The translations under genes and the position numbers were made by a program. From NCBI GenBank assembly GCA_002794465.1, contig MTSL01000157.1, positions 22,257 through 30,310 on the forward strand: 8,054 nt of DNA, written 5' to 3'. Numbering within the stretch: position 1 is the first letter of the stretch; the number at the start of each line of letters is the position of its first letter. The notes beneath the pieces are model-generated. The model was given only the letters and a program-made list of their open reading frames with translations, searched no databases and was not told the origin of the DNA. The DNA is from Paramicrosporidium saccamoebae KSL3. Taxonomy: Eukaryota; Fungi; Cryptomycota. Below, in pieces: positions 2 to 7,699 of the stretch.

Positions 2-622
2 CAAATTCGTAACGTTAGTCCGGACATTCAGCGTCTGTTCGACCTAAAAGAAGAGCATCCAAGAATCACCGATTACTTGTTGCCTCCAACATCGCCAATG
101 CCGCTTCCAAGCTGGCAAGTACCGACAGAGCGTCCACCAGTCATTCGATTTTATGATCTCTCCGGATCCTCCGGAAAAGTAGCAGTACGACCCGCATGCA
201 TCTTTGAGTAGGCTGAAGCGGGGTCTAATCTTGTAGATACTTGGAGCTGCAGCAATCTTTTAAAAACAACGTCACTTATCTAGTCGCCCTGGAGAAATTT
301 AAAAAGTTTCGCCTTGACAGAAAACCAAGAACCCATTTCATACACTCCATCGGACACTCATCACACGTTGATAGTTGGAAGCCCCCTGTGTACTGGATTG
401 TAACTAAACTGCCCCTATACTAACGGTTAGATTCATGGGATGCTAAGCAAGCCGGAAAATGGAATCTATGGCATCACCTTTGAAATCGTGGACCAGATCA
501 CGGTCAAAGTTGAGATTTGGCGTCGAGCCCCACCTGGCGCCGCCTCGAAGCTGTCAAAGGAAGAGTTTAGTCGGATTGAAGAGTTCTATCAAGTGGACAC
601 GTATAAAGCTCTTCGAAACTGA
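2..622 (+). CDS. Paralog A of the tandem secreted-protein family, 5'-truncated by the window edge; exons <2..207, 237..399, 431..622 (186 aa visible)
   Basis: Frame 2 is open from base 2. Removing GT-AG introns 208-236 and 400-430 gives ...PMPLPSWQ...IFEYLELQQSF...DSWKPPVYWIIHGMLSKPENGIYGITFEIVDQITVKVEIW...FYQVD. This aligns without gaps across both junctions with B (VFHDLNMRFVF; ESWRAPVYHILLWILQTPESTCHAIKFTILDDHSVKVKV; YYEIE). TGA at 620-622. Confidence 0.85.
208..236 (+). other. Spliceosomal intron, 29 nt (paralog A)
   Basis: GTAGGC...CTAAT...TGTAG. Contains an in-frame stop; removal gives FEYLELQQSF, colinear with FKELDMNFSF in paralog C. Confidence 0.85.
400..430 (+). other. Spliceosomal intron, 31 nt (paralog A)
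   Basis: GTAACT...TACTAAC...TTAG with a canonical TACTAAC branch point. Removal restores exact 18-residue spacing from PVYW to the ITF strand, as in B and C. Confidence 0.92.
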
Positions 623-661
623 AAAGGTCGATATAATGCCAGATCCAAGGAATCATACCCT

Positions 662-667
662 AATAAA
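662..667 (+). terminator. Putative polyadenylation signal of paralog A
   Basis: AATAAA 40 nt after the stop; all four genes have one at or near the stop. Confidence 0.5.
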
Positions 668-745
668 CTGAAAGTTAAATGAGAGGAGAGGGGTCTGTGA
701 AATGATAGGATGCTAATAACGTCTTCACAGGGTAGCATATTAGTG

Positions 746-782
746 TGTGGCGTATAAGACTGATTGGTTGGGTATTTGAGGA
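746..782. repeat. Dispersed non-coding repeat, copy 1
   Basis: TGTGGCGTATAAGACTGATTGGTTGGGTATTTGAGGA matches 7909-7945 at 33/37 nt. A further patch 871-896 resembles 7984-8007. Confidence 0.75.
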
Positions 783-1037
783 CAGTGAGGTGTGTATCCA
801 TACTATTCTAGGATTAGCAGTGAACAAACCCCTTCCCGTCTGTGGTATTATCCCCATTACGCGACAAATGGACCAAGGATACTAATGGAGTTTTACGAGA
901 TGTTTTACTGGCGGGTCAATGATCATGAGGTACTACTTTAACTTTACAGCACTTGACCTATTACGGGCACCCAATAACCAATTTCTCGTAATTTACCTGG
1001 TAGCCAAACCCTTGCCTTGTAAAGAGATTTGGTATTC

Positions 1038-2579
1038 ATGTTTTCACCCATGGTGCTCTTGTTTACTACTCTCGTGTACTTTTTACACCATGTTGCTGCC
1101 AGTCCCTGGAGGTTGCAAATTGAAACGCTTACGCAAGACATATATAATGTAAAAGATATTGGCTGTTTCACGGCTTATGGTCTATTGTACTTTTCACGCC
1201 TGGTGGTAATATTAGTCATGAGGATTGCCTAAGGTCTATCGAGGCGCCCTCGGTGCAACAAGTACGGGTTCTAAATCAGATTCATATGACTAATGCTCTG
1301 ACGTACGTCCTTGAGCTGAGCGGCTCAATAGCCAACGCCTATCACACTTGGGTTAGTTATCGCAGGTTGGACTAATTTGCAGACTCCTCGGATTACCACT
1401 CTTGAAAATAGTTTGCTGTTTAACGCTATCCACTTCCAAAAGTCTTTAGACGACCGAGTTCGCGTCAGGATTCACACCAAAATCGTCAGTAGAGATGAGA
1501 ATATTGGCCGAGCTGAAAAGCTGATTATTGAGTGGGCTAACCAAGATGGGCTTTCTGCACAAGAATTCCCTTTGTTGAAGCACGTATTTAGCCCATCTTG
1601 GAAGTTTCAAGTCATTCATTCCAAGCCTCCGGGGGATGCCTGCATTTGTGCAGCTTCATCTCGCAATATTGAGAAATTGCCCATGTATCCCCGATTTCCT
1701 GGCTAATTAGTGCTTAGGGTCTCTAATCCCATTATCTTTCAACCCGACTATACGGCCTACTTGCTTCCCCTGGACGAGTTCAGCGCTCCCTACACGGCTG
1801 AAAAGGCATACGCTATTAGAATCGTGGCCACGATCAACCAGGAGGCGGCCGCAATCGACCCAATGGTGGCCGCGGCCAACTCGATGACGGCTGTGATCAA
1901 CCCGCTGACGACCGTGATCGATCCGAGGGTTTGCAATAATGTACTGCGTTTACTGATGAGGGAATTTTGGAAAAATGACAACAAAGTGTTCTTTGGAATC
2001 TCACTTCGATTCTTTGCGCATAACAAGGTGCTCATCAGACTGTTTTATCCCAAATCAGTTAGTTATGCACTAGCCCGAAGAAATGTTCACGATCTTTGGA
2101 GCAATTCCACAAGGGCGATACTACAAAATTTTCAATTCGCGTATGAACCGTGTACGACGCCGATGCCCACCCCACCAGAATCATACAGGCAAGACAAGAC
2201 ATTGGTCCTGCAGGTTGGCACTTCTCCCATCAACCATGTTATAAATGAAAACGTGTTTCACGATCTGAATATGAGATTTGTCTTCCACCGTGGTCATCAA
2301 AATATCATTTGGCTGGCGGGCAATAGCTCTCCATTCTATCATCATGATTTTCAACTCATCAATGTATTCCACCCTCTCCTCCAGCGGGACCAGGTGGAGT
2401 CATGGAGAGCACCCGTCTATCACATACTGCTGTGGATCCTCCAGACCCCCGAATCTACATGTCATGCAATCAAGTTTACAATCTTGGACGATCACTCGGT
2501 TAAAGTAAAAGTTATGTGTGTCATGAATATCGCTCGCAGTTACTTGGATGCGCTCTATGCATATTATGAAATAGAATAA
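1038..2579 (+). CDS. Paralog B: secreted 482-aa protein with three putative divergent eIF4E-like domains; exons 1038..1186, 1216..1351, 1383..1684, 1718..2579
   Basis: The spliced length is 1449 nt and stays in frame. Signal-peptide-like N-terminus MFSPMVLLFTTLVYFLHHVAA|SPW. Colinear with paralog C across all three junctions, with shared motifs IGRxExLII, FPLL, APYTA[ED]K, VFFG, YPKSVSY, ESWRAPVYH, DDHSV, YEIE. The gene model is well supported; the eIF4E-like call is by-eye inference. Confidence 0.85.
1187..1215 (+). other. Spliceosomal intron, 29 nt (paralog B)
   Basis: GTACTT...GTAAT...TTAG, phase 2. Removal gives 36 residues from W to IE, the same count as in C, with LF aligned. Confidence 0.8.
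1352..1382 (+). other. Spliceosomal intron, 31 nt (paralog B)
   Basis: GTTAGT...ACTAAT...GCAG, phase 0, contains an in-frame TAA. Removal gives AYHTWTPRITTLENSLLF, colinear with AYSIWVAWVAASDTCHLF in C. Confidence 0.9.
1685..1717 (+). other. Spliceosomal intron, 33 nt (paralog B); position shared with paralog C intron 3782-3813
   Basis: GTATCC...GCTAAT...TTAG, phase 2, contains an in-frame TAA. Same codon position and phase as the intron in C. Confidence 0.9.
1824..1928 (+). repeat. In-frame degenerate tandem repeat, 5 x 21 nt (VATINQE/AAAIDPM/VAAANSM/TAVINPL/TTVIDPR)
   Basis: Units GTGGCCACGATCAACCAGGAG, GCGGCCGCAATCGACCCAATG, GTGGCCGCGGCCAACTCGATG, ACGGCTGTGATCAACCCGCTG, ACGACCGTGATCGATCCGAGG. 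Paralog C has a single unit (TIKVQPR) here. Confidence 0.85.
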
Positions 2580-2589
2580 CACTATTTAT

Positions 2590-2595
2590 AATAAA
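2590..2595 (+). terminator. Putative polyadenylation signal of paralog B
   Basis: AATAAA 11 nt after the TAA, in an AT-rich tract. Confidence 0.55.
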
Positions 2596-2730
2596 ATACG
2601 GACGAATTGATGGGCTAGCGAGATCAGGAAGGGAGAGAATCTGTTTACCATTAATTCAATGACATATCGTTTAGAGTAATGCTGTGATATGTAGCGGATT
2701 GATTAACCGTGTCACCTAGTGGAGATGAAG

Positions 2731-2780
2731 AGGCGAAATAGGTCGAAATAAGTCGAGATGAGTCGAGATGAGGCGAGACG
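2731..2780. repeat. Intergenic minisatellite, 5 x 10 nt
   Basis: AGGCGAAATA GGTCGAAATA AGTCGAGATG AGTCGAGATG AGGCGAGACG. Confidence 0.85.
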
Positions 2781-2964
2781 AGAGCTGGTTTGCTGTTAAT
2801 CCCACGGCCCATTTACAATCTCACGAATAGCATAGGACTGCTAAAACCATAGAGATGTAGGTCTCATCATCTTTCAACGATTGTTCCAATTAAATCTTCA
2901 CCGAACTAGGTGACTATTTTCAAAGAATATGGCAATCGATCCTCTATATTACAACCGAGTACTT

Positions 2965-2985
2965 AGGATGATTCCCTAGTTTGGA
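2965..2985. repeat. Dispersed non-coding repeat, copy 2 (partial)
   Basis: AGGATGATTCCCTAGTTTGGA matches 7942-7962 at 20/21 nt; the following GAACAATCAAT resembles GAACAATCGAT at 7976-7986. Confidence 0.7.
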
Positions 2986-3169
2986 ACAATCAATGAAATT
3001 TGTATCTTTACTATTTCAAGGTTAGCAATGAGCAGTTTCTCTTCTCGTCTGAAAAAGTCCGTGGTGGGCATCTCACTACGCGGTAATACCACGTACTCTT
3101 AGATTACATTCATTGTCCGCTTACAATGTTCCGTGATTTTAGATCCCCGGTCCTTGGTGGCAGCCATCA

Positions 3170-4687
3170 ATGATGACGGTAATCGCAATTATCGTCTGGT
3201 TCTTGTGCTGTACCATTGTCCATTGTCAATGGACATTGTATATCGGCACGGGAATGAAAGATGGCTTGAGTACGGTGGTGATACAGGAAGGTGATAGTGA
3301 TCATCTCTTCAACAGCGAAATTTTGGAACGTATTGAGAATTTTTCCGTGTGCAGTGTAACATTGGACCTGCAGACTCGCGTATCCACCTCTATGGAATAC
3401 AATCTCTCCGTGGAAGCTTCTATGGCAGAGGCATATTCCATTTGGGTCGCTTGGGTTGCTGCTTCTGATACTTGCCATCTGTTTGAAGCTGTTGAATTAA
3501 GGCAGTTGGAAAATTCCCAAGTGCACGTCCGGATTGTTACCACCAGTTTCATTCAATACCTCGATATTGGCCGAGGCGAGTACTCATTTGACTAGTTCTA
3601 ATTGTAGAGAACTGATTATCAACTGGTTCAAGCAAGAGAGATTTTCTATAAGAGTGTTTCCTCTGCTCCAGTTAGATTATGAAAGAAACTTTCACTGGAA
3701 AATTCAAGTTGTCACGCCTGAACTTTGCTGGAGCCCCAATAGCTACACCATTTACTCCCGTGATCATTGGGACATGTTATTGTAAGTCTAAGCTTTTTGC
3801 AATTAGACTTTAGAAAACTCTCATCTCTCGATTTGAACCCCGGCTCTACCGTCTATTTCCTTCCCACTGATGCATTCAATGCCCCCTACACGGCTGATAA
3901 ATCGCATGCTGTCAGGATGACAATTAAGGTGCAGCCGAGGAGCTTTGGCACCGCATGGAGACGGCTGATACAAAACTTTTATATGACTCCTCAAAACGTC
4001 TTTTTCGGAGTCTCAATTACGTACAAATGCAACTTGTATTTGGTTCGACTGTACTATCCCAAATCAGTCAGCTACATTAAGGCAAAGGCGGGTGCCAGAA
4101 ATATTTGGAGTATTCTCAAGACTGAACTGTCAATTGATATGAAAATTGTGCGCAAGCCGCCCGTACATCTATTATCCACGCCGCCTCATTCATACACCTC
4201 GCCGATGGAGCTAGTTATACGCCATGATGGTTCAGAAGGATGGACTGCTATTGGACCGCAGGTCTTTAAAGAGCTTGACATGAATTTTTCCTTCCCCCAG
4301 GGCGCCCAAAGTACCATTCGGCTGACAGATACACCTCAGCCATACTTTAGCAACCATTACCGCCGCACGTTTATAGCGCATGATCTTAGCCAACGCACCA
4401 CATTAGAATCCTGGAGAGCACCCGTCTATCATGGCCTGAAATGGATGCTTGACACCTACTCTGAATTTCAATGTTACTCGATTGAATTTGCAGTCGTGGA
4501 TGACCATTCCGTTCTGATTCAAATCTGGTGCGCGGTGCATAACGGCCATGAAATGTTCCAACCTCTCAAAACGCACTACGAAATAGAGCTTATATCGCCC
4601 GCTTTTAGAGATGACAGCGACCCGTTCCTTTACTTATTTCGCTGGGCACAGCTTTTTAAAATGGCCAAGGGTTCATTAAATCCATGA
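3170..4687 (+). CDS. Paralog C: secreted 485-aa protein with three putative divergent eIF4E-like domains; exons 3170..3579, 3608..3781, 3814..4687
   Basis: The spliced length is 1458 nt and stays in frame. Signal-peptide-like N-terminus MMTVIAIIVWFLCCTIVHC|QW. Colinear with B. The middle domain has eIF4E-like motifs (HWKIQVV, CWSPN, RDHWDML, LSSLDLNPGS, TAWRRL, FFGVSI, VRLYY). The gene model is well supported; the fold assignment is inference. Confidence 0.88.
3580..3607 (+). other. Spliceosomal intron, 28 nt (paralog C)
   Basis: GTACTC...CTAAT...TGTAG. Removal gives DIGRGEELIINW, matching the uninterrupted NIGRAEKLIIEW in B. Confidence 0.92.
3782..3813 (+). other. Spliceosomal intron, 32 nt (paralog C)
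   Basis: GTAAGT...TTTAG, phase 2. Only the 3813 acceptor (not 3806) restores frame; same position as B intron 1685-1717. Confidence 0.88.
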
Positions 4688-4719
4688 TATCAAGGCACCT
4701 CTGGTCTAGAAACTCGAAT

Positions 4720-4725
4720 AATAAA
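4720..4725 (+). terminator. Putative polyadenylation signal of paralog C, inside the 69-nt gap before the Timeless gene
   Basis: AATAAA 33 nt after the TGA. Confidence 0.5.
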
Positions 4726-4756
4726 TTGGTTTCTTTAGATAGTGCAACAATTCAGC

Positions 4757-7699
4757 ATGCTTGGTGCGCGGGAAAGTCGATCTGAATCCACTGCTGAGTC
4801 TAGAGGACGTCCCAAGACTAAAGCGGATGTGCGCGAGCTCTATCGTCCCATTGACGTTGAGAGTGCCTCCCTCCTTCACGGAATATGCGGACGTCTTGGC
4901 CATCTTCCCAGGGACGGCTCCACCTATGTGCTCTCTGTGGATTTTTCCGACGCACTCGACGACCTTGTCCGGATGATTTCTGCAGACGAAGGACCTGTTT
5001 TGGTGAAATTGGGAGAAATGCAGACGGTGGGAAGACATTTGGCTCCAATGCTGCGGGTGGTGGAACGAAAGCGTTTTGGAGAGGCGCTCTTTACATTGCT
5101 CAATCTTTTGGTGTTACTCACGTCAGCAGAGACGACGGCGAACCGTGCAACTCCCGAGACGCTGCTTGATTTCCGTCGACAATACAAAAAAGTGTTTGAA
5201 TCAAAAGATGTCTTGGCAGCTCTTTTGGGAGTGGCGCTCACATGTGTCCGTCCGCGAAAGGATACTGCAAATGACGATGCAGAGCTGCTTCGGAAGGTGT
5301 TAACTTTGGTTCGAAATCTTCTTGCCATCCCAGACGCGAATTGTAGTTATAGCAGCTCACATGTTGCCCTCGCCAGCTCTTTCGGTCGACAGGAACGTCT
5401 GATCGCAGCCATGAAGGACAGTCGACTTTTGGAATTTATCATTGTTGTTGCCAGCTCTTGCAGTGATGCACGCGATGGACGCGTCTTTGGACCGCATGTG
5501 CCGCTGGTGGTGGAAATATTCCAATGTCTTCTCTGTGCATCGGATCCGGATGCAATTGCGGCGATTCATGAGTTGGATGTAGATGGACCTCAAAATTGCG
5601 GAACGGAACAGTCCCTGCAGAAGGAGACCAAGCTGCGGAAGCCCATTAGACACAGTCGTTTTTCTGGGTCCGTGGTTGTCCGTCTGTCGGTATTTAGGAG
5701 GAAAATTATTAATATGTTTAGACGGGCGAAGATTACATATTGCCAGGTTCTAAAATGAGAGACATGGTAACTCTGGATGAAGGAAAACGCGTCCAACACC
5801 GACCAAAGAAGCTCACCATTGTATGGTTTTAATTGCATCGGTAATCTGTAGAATCATTTCGGGGACAATTCAGTAGCTGCAAGGACGGTGGAGAAAAAGA
5901 TGATATTTGACATTGCCATTGATATTGTCAAAAGCTGCTTCAATGAGCTGGTCCGCTTCTGTCATCGTTCTGAAGAAAATGAGCAGCTTTCTGACAATTT
6001 GAATTGGAATCTTTTGAATCTGATGGCCTGGTGTCTGCGACTGGTTCGGCAATTGCAGACTAAGAAGGATCCTCCGATCGATGCCTCCAGCGTGTTTGCG
6101 GCGGTGGATGTGGATTCAATGGTTTCCTTTGGACGTTGCTTGCGCAGATTGCTGAATATGAAGCAGTATGCCACGGTCCTGGCTTGTGGGCTGTTCTTCC
6201 GCGAAGCGTTTCGGTTTTTAGATTTCATGGTTCAGAGTCCCATTGCAGCCTTGTCAACGGCTGGAAAAGACATTGAGACGGGACTGTTCTATCGCCACGA
6301 GGTGATTTCAGTATTCCGACTGGCTATCCAAGAGTCAAGGAGGTTTTCCACAAAGATGCTTTCTGTGCTTGTGGAGGCGAATCATGTGCTGCTAAAGCTC
6401 CTCAAAGCATACTGCAGCGACAGGAGACACATGTTTGTGGCACATGCAAAGCGCACCAACCGCGATTCGGAAGACGCCGAGGAGCTGCATGATGCAGAAA
6501 GGGAATTTCTATTTGATGCGTTTATTGCTGATTATGCCAACGAATCGTTTGTTGACGCCTGCACCAGATTGTTGAGAGAGGCCAGGAACCTCGATCCCAA
6601 TACCAACCGATTTGTAGCCACCATGCTTGGACGTCTGGTAAAGGAGACAAAGATGCCAATGCTGCTGTTCCGGGTCTCGGTGATGGAGGCATTCCATGGC
6701 ATTTTATCAAATGTCAACTCAGGGTGGAGACGGACAAACACAGATTTAATCAAAGTTGCTGCTTCAATCACCAAGGCGTTTTTGGCAGAAGTACAAAAGG
6801 ATCCAGTGCTAATCATTGGTGCATTTTTCAACACTTTGAGCATTTGTCGGACAGTGAGGACCGATCCGACTGCGGCGGTAAAAGATGTGGATATTGCCAT
6901 TCTGCCCGAGTATTGGTCGCTGGATGAAAAGATCAAGTGGTTGGTGCGCACCCTTGCAGACGCAGAAATGTCATCAACAATATCATGGTTATGCGGACGG
7001 CTCTTTGATGCCGCTGCCAGCCGAGGCGTCAAGGTGGAGGATGGCTCAGCGCCTGACTTTTATCTCCATGCACAAACTGATTCTCTAAAGAGCGCTTTTG
7101 AGAATTCTCACTTCTGCCGATTGCTAGTGGAAGCCGGAGTCACCCCTCCGACTAATGAAGAACGTAGTTGGCATGTAGCTGGCACCCTGACAGCAGATGA
7201 AATTATTCAAAAGGCAAATCTTATTCAGACATCACTCCGTGACACCATCTCTGCAGAGGATACAGCTATAAGTAGTCGACCGTCGACCATAATGCGCTCA
7301 AAGACGGACATTGACGATGCTGATAGTGGTGAAAGTACCGAGGAAGAGAAAATACAATCCAAATCAAGAAGCAACAAAGTGCGATCCAAAGCAAATGAAA
7401 ACGAAATGCAATCTGAAACGAGAAGAACTGCAATGCGACCAGAGTCAGGGTCCGAGTCCGAGTCCAGGTCGGAGTTGGAGTCGGAGTCGGAGAGTGACAA
7501 GATGACTTTTCAGAGCGATGCAGACTTGGTTGCTCCGCAAACACCAGCAATTTCGAAATGGGAAAGTCTTAAGAGGAACAATTTCTTCTTGACCGCTTTA
7601 CCTGATGACGATGGAGAGGAAGGGGAAGAGGAAGAGGAAGAGGAAATGGTTCGCCCAAAAAGGCCTCCGTTGGCTATTTACAGCGAAGATGAAGAATAA
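4757..7699 (+). CDS. TOF1: Timeless/Tof1/Swi1 replication fork protection complex subunit, 959 aa; exons 4757..5689, 5722..5820, 5852..7699
   Basis: Recognisable TIMELESS-family motifs: ICGRLG..Y.....D.LDDL.RMI, VLVKLGEMQTV...LAPML, YKKVF, VLTLVRNLLAIPD, RHSRFSG, LDEGK...PK, and later ISWL...L and FCRLLVEAG...W. Two introns join the ORFs 4742-5758 and 5888-7699 in frame. First ATG is at 4757. Acidic low-complexity C-terminus. Confidence 0.9.
5690..5721 (+). other. Spliceosomal intron, 32 nt (Timeless/Tof1)
   Basis: GTATTT...TTAAT...TTTAG, phase 0. Removal opens a 33-codon exon (TGEDYILPG...LDEGKRVQHRPKKLTI) directly after RHSRFSGSVVVRLS. Confidence 0.85.
5821..5851 (+). other. Spliceosomal intron, 31 nt (Timeless/Tof1)
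   Basis: GTATGG...GTAAT...TGTAG, phase 0. Joins the middle exon to the frame of ORF 5888-7699. Confidence 0.85.
7442..7495 (+). repeat. Coding hexanucleotide repeat (GAGTCS)n encoding a Glu-Ser tract in Tof1
   Basis: GAGTCAGGGTCCGAGTCCGAGTCCAGGTCGGAGTTGGAGTCGGAGTCGGAGAGT = ESGSESESRSELESESES. Confidence 0.85.
7604..7645 (+). repeat. Coding GAR-rich repeat encoding a poly-acidic tract in Tof1
   Basis: DDDGEEGEEEEEEE, with alternating GAA/GAG codons. Confidence 0.8.

Follow-up and report, generated by a model that had tools for sequence, protein, structure and literature searches.

Three same-strand paralogous genes (A, B and C), lying within positions 2-4687 of a stretch of Paramicrosporidium saccamoebae contig MTSL01000157.1 (hereafter the window, 8,054 nucleotides in all), raise the question of whether a parasite exports proteins made from a translation-factor fold. 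A sequence-only reading of this DNA had proposed as much, describing an expanded, secreted, translation-targeting family built from eIF4E-like domains, and it rightly guessed an intracellular parasite, P. saccamoebae being a parasite that lives in the nucleus of Saccamoeba. Proteins with the eIF4E fold are known as cap binders that consist of one domain and stay inside the cell, and eIF4E's own description (single-domain, cytosolic or nuclear, no signal peptide) does not apply to A, B and C. To our knowledge, next to nothing is known of the effectors and surface proteins of Rozellomycota and of early Microsporidia-like parasites. The earlier reading knew of no published description of such a family, and our literature search likewise found none; as far as found, an eIF4E-fold protein combining a signal peptide, three modules and tandem duplication has not been described before. 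The interpretation that we favour, at a probability of about 0.5, is that these are lineage-specific secreted or surface proteins that use an eIF4E fold as a binding scaffold.

Gene models of the three paralogues

Once short GT..AG introns are spliced out, all three paralogues are present where they had been placed. Most of the introns measure 28-33 nt and a single one 74 nt, with CTAAT or CTAAC as the branch point. Paralogue A occupies positions 2..622 of the plus strand (exons 2..207, 237..399 and 431..622; stop codon 620-622), and the part inside the window is its C-terminal 186 aa, consisting of linker and domain 3 with an SWKPPVY motif and the hairpin IYGITF..VEIW. The remainder of A sits 5' of the window, past an N-run assembly gap, and upstream exons are seen there. 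Paralogue B (467 aa; 1038..2579, plus strand) is assembled from exons 1038..1148, 1223..1351, 1383..1684 and 1718..2579, the first of which is conserved in frame in L005, a contig of a relative, whereas the first exon of the GenBank model meets a stop there. Within B, Tandem Repeats Finder (TRF) marks 2.4 copies of a 21-nt (7-aa) unit (1877..1926, plus strand) inside a B-specific 28-aa insertion in the domain-2 loop that links strand 4 to helix 2; in the alignment, neither C nor the orthologues B' and C' have this insertion.

Paralogue C (485 aa; 3170..4687, plus strand; exons 3170..3579, 3608..3781 and 3814..4687) shares its intron positions with its orthologue in contig L005 and gives the clearest view of the family's architecture. 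Its domain 1 (residues 20-153; 3227..3656, plus strand, with intron 3580-3607 inside) has its secondary structure from the low-confidence whole-protein model described below, domain 2 (residues 154-334; 3657..4231, plus strand, with intron 3782-3813 inside) is the one with a predicted eIF4E-like fold, and domain 3 (residues 335-460; 4232..4609, plus strand) is described by alignments together with the secondary structure of the whole-protein model. Domain 3 is the family's best-conserved part: W395, P398 and Y400 of its ESWRAPVY motif are invariant, and SW(R/K)xPVY recurs in every family member. In the alignment, identity to C is 33% for B and 30% for A (30-33% among the paralogues overall).

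The GenBank models of A, B and C are wrong, with B annotated without its signal-peptide exon and C fused to the neighbouring Timeless gene, so that proteome-wide secretome or structure screens would miss all three proteins. We rejected C and Timeless as a single gene on the grounds that C has its own stop at 4685-4687, with the tail conserved up to that stop in the orthologue; the fusion is also ruled out by Timeless having its own ATG at 4757 and an intact N-terminal domain. In related species the cluster keeps its position between a gene for a secreted helical protein and Timeless. The contig that holds the cluster also carries homeodomain and T-box genes; a small animal as the source, which these had suggested, was rejected because the accession belongs to P. 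saccamoebae.

Predicted fold and sequence comparison with eIF4E

The sequence-only reading had named structure prediction followed by Foldseek as a check on the eIF4E resemblance, and for domain 2 this check matched eIF4E in both structure collections searched. AlphaFold2 was run without template on shallow alignments (3 sequences for the whole protein, 8 for domain 2), with database fragments among the homologue input, and neither model contains a residue with pLDDT >90. Modelled alone, domain 2 of C (pTM 0.65, mean pLDDT 62.8) is predicted to adopt an eIF4E-like fold, with the element order b1b2a1b3b4a2b5b6a3b7 as in eIF4E; the nine elements b1-a3 closely match those of eIF4E in length, and the short b7 is less certain (pLDDT about 50-66). 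Against the PDB (350,542 chains), the best 50 matches to this model were all eIF4E or 4EHP (E 2.9e-7 to 3.4e-6; TMq 0.47-0.57, TMt 0.47-0.61), and 167 matches reached E<=1e-3. The best 50 matches of the whole-protein model (mean pLDDT 52.9) were likewise all eIF4E. Domains 1 and 3 probably share the fold of domain 2, to judge from an eIF4E-compatible order of strands and helices seen only in the low-confidence whole-protein model (pLDDT 52.9). The claim that these proteins are built from eIF4E-like domains thus stands for domain 2, as a predicted fold, and extends to domains 1 and 3 only as far as their element order in that model.

Searched against BFVD, domain 2 again found eIF4Es, the best matches being almost all from giant viruses or poxviruses (E 5e-7 to 1e-6), alongside a few entries that are unnamed or uncharacterised. 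Examples are the homologues of Mimivirus LCMiAC02 (A0A481Z0U3) and Alphaentomopoxvirus (W6JLI2). These viral proteins are also divergent members of the eIF4E fold and likewise belong to parasites that infect amoebae or other hosts, but they differ from the family in being sequence-recognisable eIF4Es, single-module and not secreted, and we found no evidence of a descent link between the two. BLES03/DUF1917 (C11orf68-type) proteins, which the earlier reading had listed for structural comparison, belong to the same general eIF4E-like fold class; they gave no Pfam match and a single structural match, far weaker than those to eIF4E (BFVD E=0.042, TM about 0.3).

None of this resemblance is visible in sequence. 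The peptide strings that the sequence-only reading had quoted are all found in the window proteins, and the human and yeast eIF4E strings that it had set against them are correct (the full sequences are identical to PDB 1IPB and 1AP8), but the by-eye similarity between them proved to be at chance level. Each domain aligned pairwise with human eIF4E scored z -1.6 to +1.2 against 500 shuffles. A search with the Pfam IF4E profile (PF01652), which that reading had also suggested, gave no match at E<=1 with the complete B and C proteins and none up to E=10 with separate domains and with relatives; no other Pfam family matched these proteins, and a family profile found nothing at E<=10 among PDB sequences. 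Comparison by hhalign with a small eIF4E alignment (vertebrate sequences plus yeast and Chaetomium, the added ones checked against the PDB) returned P=0.25-0.83, which is weak evidence because that profile is shallow. With every sequence-level test negative, the by-eye motifs have no statistical support, and sequence homology to eIF4E is not supported. Among the three modules themselves hhalign also found nothing significant (the best was the domain 1 versus domain 3 hairpin, P=0.059), and since they have no detectable mutual similarity, triplication by internal duplication cannot be shown from sequence.

The positions of the cap-contacting residues were placed by secondary-structure anchoring on the alignments, so the mapping is approximate for want of a residue-level structural alignment. 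The W56 position holds W (W178) in C and C' only; at the W102 position the B and C lineages have Y (Y220), whereas A has R and L001-type members have V; E103 is matched by T, S or a variable residue; and dorsal W73 is not conserved across the family. The W166 position, on strand 6, keeps an aromatic in all members. By this mapping the canonical cap triad W56/W102/E103 is not conserved across the paralogues. As the cap-binding residues are not kept across the family, and as the parasite resides in the host nucleus, the label "translation-targeting" goes unsupported. Set beside eIF4E/4EHP (PF01652; PDB 1EJ1, 4UEB, 5NVL), domain 2 therefore shares a predicted element order, similar element lengths, TM-scores of about 0.5-0.6 both ways, a W in strand 1 and the strand-6 aromatic, whereas the family departs from eIF4E in its undetectable sequence similarity, its signal peptide, its three modules per chain rather than one, and its restriction to a few Paramicrosporidium-like lineages where eIF4E is found in all eukaryotes.

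Secretion signals, distribution and evolution of the family

The earlier reading had ascribed signal peptides to the complete paralogues, and a heuristic hand rule (hydropathy plus a cleavage-type site, not SignalP) agrees, finding signal-peptide-like N-termini in B (MFSPMVLLFTTLVYFLHHVAA, followed by SP; (-3,-1) cleavage-type site VAA before SP) and in C (MMTVIAIIVWFLCCTIVHC, followed by QW; (-3,-1) cleavage-type site VHC before QW). The N-terminus of A, outside the window beyond the gap, is likewise signal-peptide-like. Across A, B, C, B' and C' the Kyte-Doolittle value of the h-region is 2.3-3.2 and (-3,-1) sites are present; the n-regions of these candidate signal peptides carry no positive charge. 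No further hydrophobic segment was found in the same five proteins (no other 19-aa window exceeded 1.6), and the C-termini carry no HDEL or KDEL retention signal. By the hand rule, the proteins fit the profile of effector candidates: a signal peptide at the N-terminus, no second membrane-spanning stretch and no signal for ER retention.

An exhaustive HMMER search of 1.84 billion (1.84e9) protein representatives gave 12 matches, about 11 of them credible and all of those Paramicrosporidium-like sequences. The match that we set aside, P0019, is a 1541-aa animal HYR-repeat protein with 8 matches to the Pro/Thr-rich linker, probably spurious and compositional. A word-indexed homologue search with C returned nothing, which reflects a limit of sensitivity, as HMMER later found relatives, and none of the 27 matches to the ESWRAPVY pattern in a metagenome scan was confirmed. 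Three genes at this locus and about 11 credible matches in so large a collection do not amount to the expanded family that had been described.

Measured against a close relative, dN/dS is 0.25-0.47 for the family and 0.09 for neighbouring Timeless, such that the family evolves about 4 times faster than Timeless yet remains under purifying selection; these are real genes. The family is absent from the syntenic site in a more distant relative (that locus). It could sit elsewhere in the genome of that relative. Host-interface proteins usually show the same set of features: rapid evolution, a signal peptide and restriction to a lineage.

Candidate roles in a nucleus-dwelling parasite

The reading that we favour would work as follows. 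Proteins of about 470-490 aa would enter the secretory pathway through their putative N-terminal signal peptides, each carrying three modules of about 130-180 aa apiece, and inside the host nucleus the parasite cell, which has no wall, would release them or present them on its surface. The middle module is predicted to form a curved antiparallel sheet with three helices behind it, and the concave sheets of such eIF4E-type modules may serve as binding surfaces for a putative host ligand. This ligand is probably not a cap bound in the classical manner, since the family as a whole has not kept the canonical pocket for m7G. By the simplest account the fold would be a very old, strongly diverged eIF4E derivative, fitted with a signal peptide and tripled, and would reflect descent rather than convergence.

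An unlikely alternative, which would nonetheless make these the first such proteins identified outside canonical Microsporidia, is that they are structural components of the spore (of its wall, or of the polar filament and anchoring apparatus), secreted during sporogenesis rather than directed at the host, with the eIF4E-like modules as building blocks. The polar tube and spore wall proteins of Microsporidia carry signal peptides, evolve fast and are confined to particular lineages, and two of them, PTP1 and PTP2, are encoded in tandem; our family shares the signal peptide, the lineage restriction, the tandem genes and the raised dN/dS, and P. saccamoebae forms spores with a polar filament, being a polar-filament-bearing relative of Microsporidia without detectable polar tube or spore wall homologues. 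The family nevertheless shows no Pfam similarity to known polar tube or spore wall families, and none of the Pro-, Lys- or Gly-rich repetitive composition of PTP1/PTP2; its globular three-domain build suggests binding rather than polymer formation, and a core part of the spore should have been retained at the syntenic site of the related lineage. We know of no structure of a microsporidian polar tube or spore wall protein with which to compare the predicted fold. The Pfam negative does not by itself exclude a spore role, because such proteins evolve too fast; the P. saccamoebae genome paper, too, found no polar filament protein by HMMs, and its authors blamed fast evolution.

Quite doubtful, in our judgement, is the proposal that the modules bind caps, RNA 5' ends or nucleotides and are exported into the host nucleus, to tie up or gather host RNA that bears a cap, or to rival host eIF4E and cap-binding complexes. 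By virtue of their three modules such binders would be multivalent, and the capture of capped host RNA, whether for scavenging or for crippling host mRNA export or translation, is equally doubtful. The predicted eIF4E fold of domain 2, the presence of W178 and Y220 of C and its orthologue in the loops that bear W56 and W102 of eIF4E, and the aromatic at the W166 position in all members speak for it, as does the biology of a parasite without de novo purine and pyrimidine synthesis and without nucleoside kinases, which, as the genome authors speculate, may import host mRNA and break it down to obtain nucleotides. Telling against it are the absence of the aromatic pair in A, in B (which lacks a W56 equivalent) and in L001-type members, the replacement of the m7G-reading glutamate E103, the lack of sequence similarity to eIF4E, a residue mapping based on secondary-structure anchoring rather than structural alignment, and the fact that translation itself is not nuclear. 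The least probable explanation is that the resemblance to eIF4E arose as an artefact of predicting structure from little information and that these are secreted orphans of another alpha/beta fold. Alignments of 3 and 8 sequences, pLDDT of 52.9 and 62.8 with no residue above 90, and uniformly negative sequence-based tests speak for it, but the whole-protein and domain-only models were run separately and agree, the PDB matches listed were exclusively eIF4E (among 350,542 chains) with the result repeated among very divergent eIF4Es in the independent BFVD, and a pTM of 0.65 came with elements in eIF4E order and of closely matching length, with no template supplied.

If the modules do bind RNA ends or nucleotides, they would offer a handle on an open question posed by the genome authors, namely how a parasite that lives in the nucleus and cannot synthesise nucleotides obtains its nutrition from the host, and exported RNA binders would be the first secreted, multivalent class of eIF4E-derived effectors. 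On either the RNA-binding or the spore reading, fold prediction would have recovered a relationship that is invisible to sequence methods.

A tandem cluster of three paralogous genes next to Timeless

The window is eukaryotic sequence in which long open reading frame pieces on the + strand resolve into genes after excision of short GT..AG introns (mostly 28-33 nt, one of 74 nt, each with a CTAAT or CTAAC branch point near the acceptor). Removing these introns recovered the tandem same-strand paralogues that a sequence-only reading had proposed: A (2..207, 237..399, 431..622, + strand; the last 186 aa only within the window), B (1038..1148, 1223..1351, 1383..1684, 1718..2579, + strand; 467 aa) and C (3170..3579, 3608..3781, 3814..4687, + strand; 485 aa). 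In an alignment of the three, B is 33% and A 30% identical to C, with an SW(R/K)xPVY motif among the invariant residues. The window matches positions 8912-16965 of an enclosing 21.5-kb stretch (L007) of the source contig, MTSL01000157.1 in assembly GCA_002794465.1, exactly and begins inside A for a technical reason, because an N-run assembly gap directly 5' of it (L007 about 8756-8911) separates domain 2 of gene A from the linker. On the 5' side of this gap lie exons for domains 1 and 2 of A, plus a signal-peptide-like start (MYVPQLLLSLLVLAVKA|SD). The cluster comprises exactly three genes, bordered on one side by the gene of another signal-peptide-bearing protein and on the other by Timeless/Tof1, which lies downstream of C (4757 to 7699; PF04821, E 1.8e-27, plus TIMELESS_C).

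The GenBank models for all three paralogues are wrong. That of A has its N-terminus joined to the preceding gene and its C-terminus as a separate 92-aa model, while that of B (396 aa) begins with another, non-conserved exon and thereby loses the signal peptide; this exon contains a stop codon in a close relative, where our exon 1 is kept in frame. C is merged with Timeless as a 1374-aa protein (window 3170-7699; L007 12081-16610), a single gene that we rejected, since C terminates at a stop of its own (4685-4687) and a separate ATG opens Timeless at 4757.

Several repeats were also seen. A 21-nt tandem repeat (1877-1926, 2.4 copies) sits inside a 28-aa insertion (AAIDPMVAAANSMTAVINPLTTVIDP) found only in this species' paralogue B and absent from the close relative's B orthologue, and between B and C, at 2730-2782, about 4 copies of a 10-nt unit (GTCGAGATGA-like) are repeated in tandem. 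In Timeless, two hexanucleotide repeats, (GAGTCG)n at 7442-7492 and (AGAGGA)n at 7615-7645, encode acidic stretches of the C-terminal tail, Ser/Glu-rich and poly-Glu. The same contig carries homeodomain and T-box transcription factor genes (L007 1-1378), which at first pointed to an animal; both families are known in early-diverging fungi.

A young, lineage-restricted and fast-evolving family

The A/B/C profile, run exhaustively with HMMER against 1.84 billion representative proteins, matched 12 of them: the window's own B and A, close-relative orthologues, distant members from two or three Paramicrosporidium-like organisms known only through metagenomes and SRA assemblies, and one animal HYR-repeat protein that we judged spurious. 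Among them is P0011, a 254-aa orthologue 64% identical to C over the aligned C-terminal region; a word-indexed protein search with C gave no match despite its existence, revealing a sensitivity gap of that search. At the same locus in the species represented by contigs L001-L003 (Timeless 62% identical), at least two family members lie between the flanking signal-peptide-bearing gene and Timeless, whereas in the more distant L006 (Timeless 46%) the family is absent at the locus and the flanking gene adjoins Timeless directly; the cluster is therefore young and restricted to the lineage.

Comparing the window with the close relative's contigs L005 and L008 (both from one metagenome), we found dN/dS of 0.25-0.47 and identities of 51-69% for the family exons, against 0.09 and 90% amino-acid identity for Timeless. 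A, B and C are thus genuine genes: purifying selection acts on them, and they change about four times as fast as neighbouring Timeless. The B orthologue on L005 shows a frame change mid-domain 3 (about 1380-1850), and its database protein, P0015, reads on in a different frame; the cause is an error of sequencing or assembly, or else the copy has become a pseudogene.

Predicted eIF4E fold of the middle module

The sequence-only reading had held the proteins to be built from eIF4E-like domains, a claim that stood for domain 2 by predicted fold but had no significant support in any sequence test. All the peptide strings it quoted by eye are present in the window proteins, yet neither Pfam IF4E nor DUF1917 matched whole proteins or single domains, and the family profile hit no PDB sequence at E<=10. 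Local and global alignments of each domain with human eIF4E fell inside the shuffle distribution (z -1.6 to +1.2; the human and yeast references are identical to PDB 1IPB and 1AP8), hhalign against a small eIF4E alignment gave P 0.25-0.83, and modules 1, 2 and 3 showed no significant similarity to one another.

An AlphaFold2 model of whole C (3-sequence alignment) was poor (pLDDT 52.9, pTM 0.34), with repeated strand-strand-helix units in each third, and its best 50 PDB matches, scored for C as a whole, were all eIF4E or 4EHP (E from 4.6e-5, target TM 0.50-0.63). To localise the match, domain 2 was modelled alone (residues 154-334, 8-sequence alignment; pLDDT 62.8, pTM 0.65), revealing the element order of eIF4E (b1 b2 a1 b3 b4 a2 b5 b6 a3 b7). 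In a Foldseek search of 350,542 PDB chains, which gave 167 matches at E<=1e-3, the top 50 were all eIF4E (E 2.9e-7 to 3.4e-6; TM 0.47-0.57 by query and 0.47-0.61 by target; 147-180 aligned columns). Against BFVD, an independent library, eIF4Es from giant viruses and a poxvirus made up nearly all of the best matches (E 5e-7), the exceptions being a few unnamed or uncharacterised entries, and a DUF1917 protein appeared only at E=0.04. With moderate confidence, we predict an eIF4E fold for domain 2. Domains 1 and 3 follow an eIF4E-like element order as far as a2-b5-b6-a3 in the weak whole-C model only, and would share the fold; we infer that the family descends from eIF4E.

Residues were compared with eIF4E by anchoring on secondary-structure elements, which makes the mapping approximate. 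The W56 loop holds W178 in C and its orthologue and no aromatic in B or its orthologue; in the B and C lineages the W102-E103 loop has the sequence APYTADK (Y220, T221), while the W102 position is R in A and V in the L001-type member; and the strand 6 W166 position is Y, F or W in all members. From the pattern at the W56, W102 and E103 positions, the aromatic sandwich and cap-reading glutamate of eIF4E are therefore not features of this family. Judged by these residues, the family in general is unlikely to bind m7G in the classical way, paralogue C being at best a possible exception.

Probable secretion and possible roles

The signal peptides noted by the sequence-only reading on the complete paralogues B and C were supported by a hand rule rather than SignalP (Kyte-Doolittle hydrophobicity over a 10-residue window plus a small-x-small site), as was that of A upstream of the gap. 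The N-termini of A, B, C and the two orthologues score 2.3-3.2 and then carry a small-x-small site at 17-21 (Timeless control, -1.05), with no second hydrophobic segment and no ER-retention tail, and the proteins are probably secreted. The guess of an intracellular parasite was correct, as the source is Paramicrosporidium saccamoebae KSL3, a member of Rozellomycota living inside the nucleus of the amoeba Saccamoeba (7.3 Mb, 3750 genes, 47% GC; PMC5701793).

We favour, at about even odds (roughly 0.5), proteins of the host interface, secreted or exposed at the surface, in which the eIF4E sheet would be reused as a putative binding scaffold. The main rival, structural proteins of the spore or polar filament, is unlikely, though P. 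saccamoebae possesses a polar filament, its genome has yielded no protein of that structure, and such proteins likewise combine signal peptides, tandem arrangement and fast evolution. Cap or RNA binding inside the host, as the sequence-only reading would have it, fits an organism without nucleotide synthesis and nucleoside kinases, whose genome authors suggested uptake of host mRNA as speculation (PMC5701793), but the residue pattern speaks against a canonical pocket and we consider it quite improbable. That the fold is a prediction artefact, as the shallow alignments behind the models might allow, is more doubtful still. The eIF4E fold itself is known, and what would be new is its architecture, putative compartment and lineage here: the genome paper (PMC5701793) nowhere mentions secreted proteins, effectors or eIF4E, and our full-text literature searches gave no description of such a family, neither a paper on secreted or multi-module eIF4E-fold proteins nor a Paramicrosporidium secretome analysis mentioning it.

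The flanking signal-peptide-bearing gene (L007 6678-7770, upstream of the window; L001 94-1152; L006 8801-9925) encodes about 350-375 aa with no Pfam match and, judged by eye, a helix-rich look, and its synteny is kept in all related contigs. Upstream of it in L006 lie several more small signal-peptide-like ORFs, and the region may be rich in secreted proteins.
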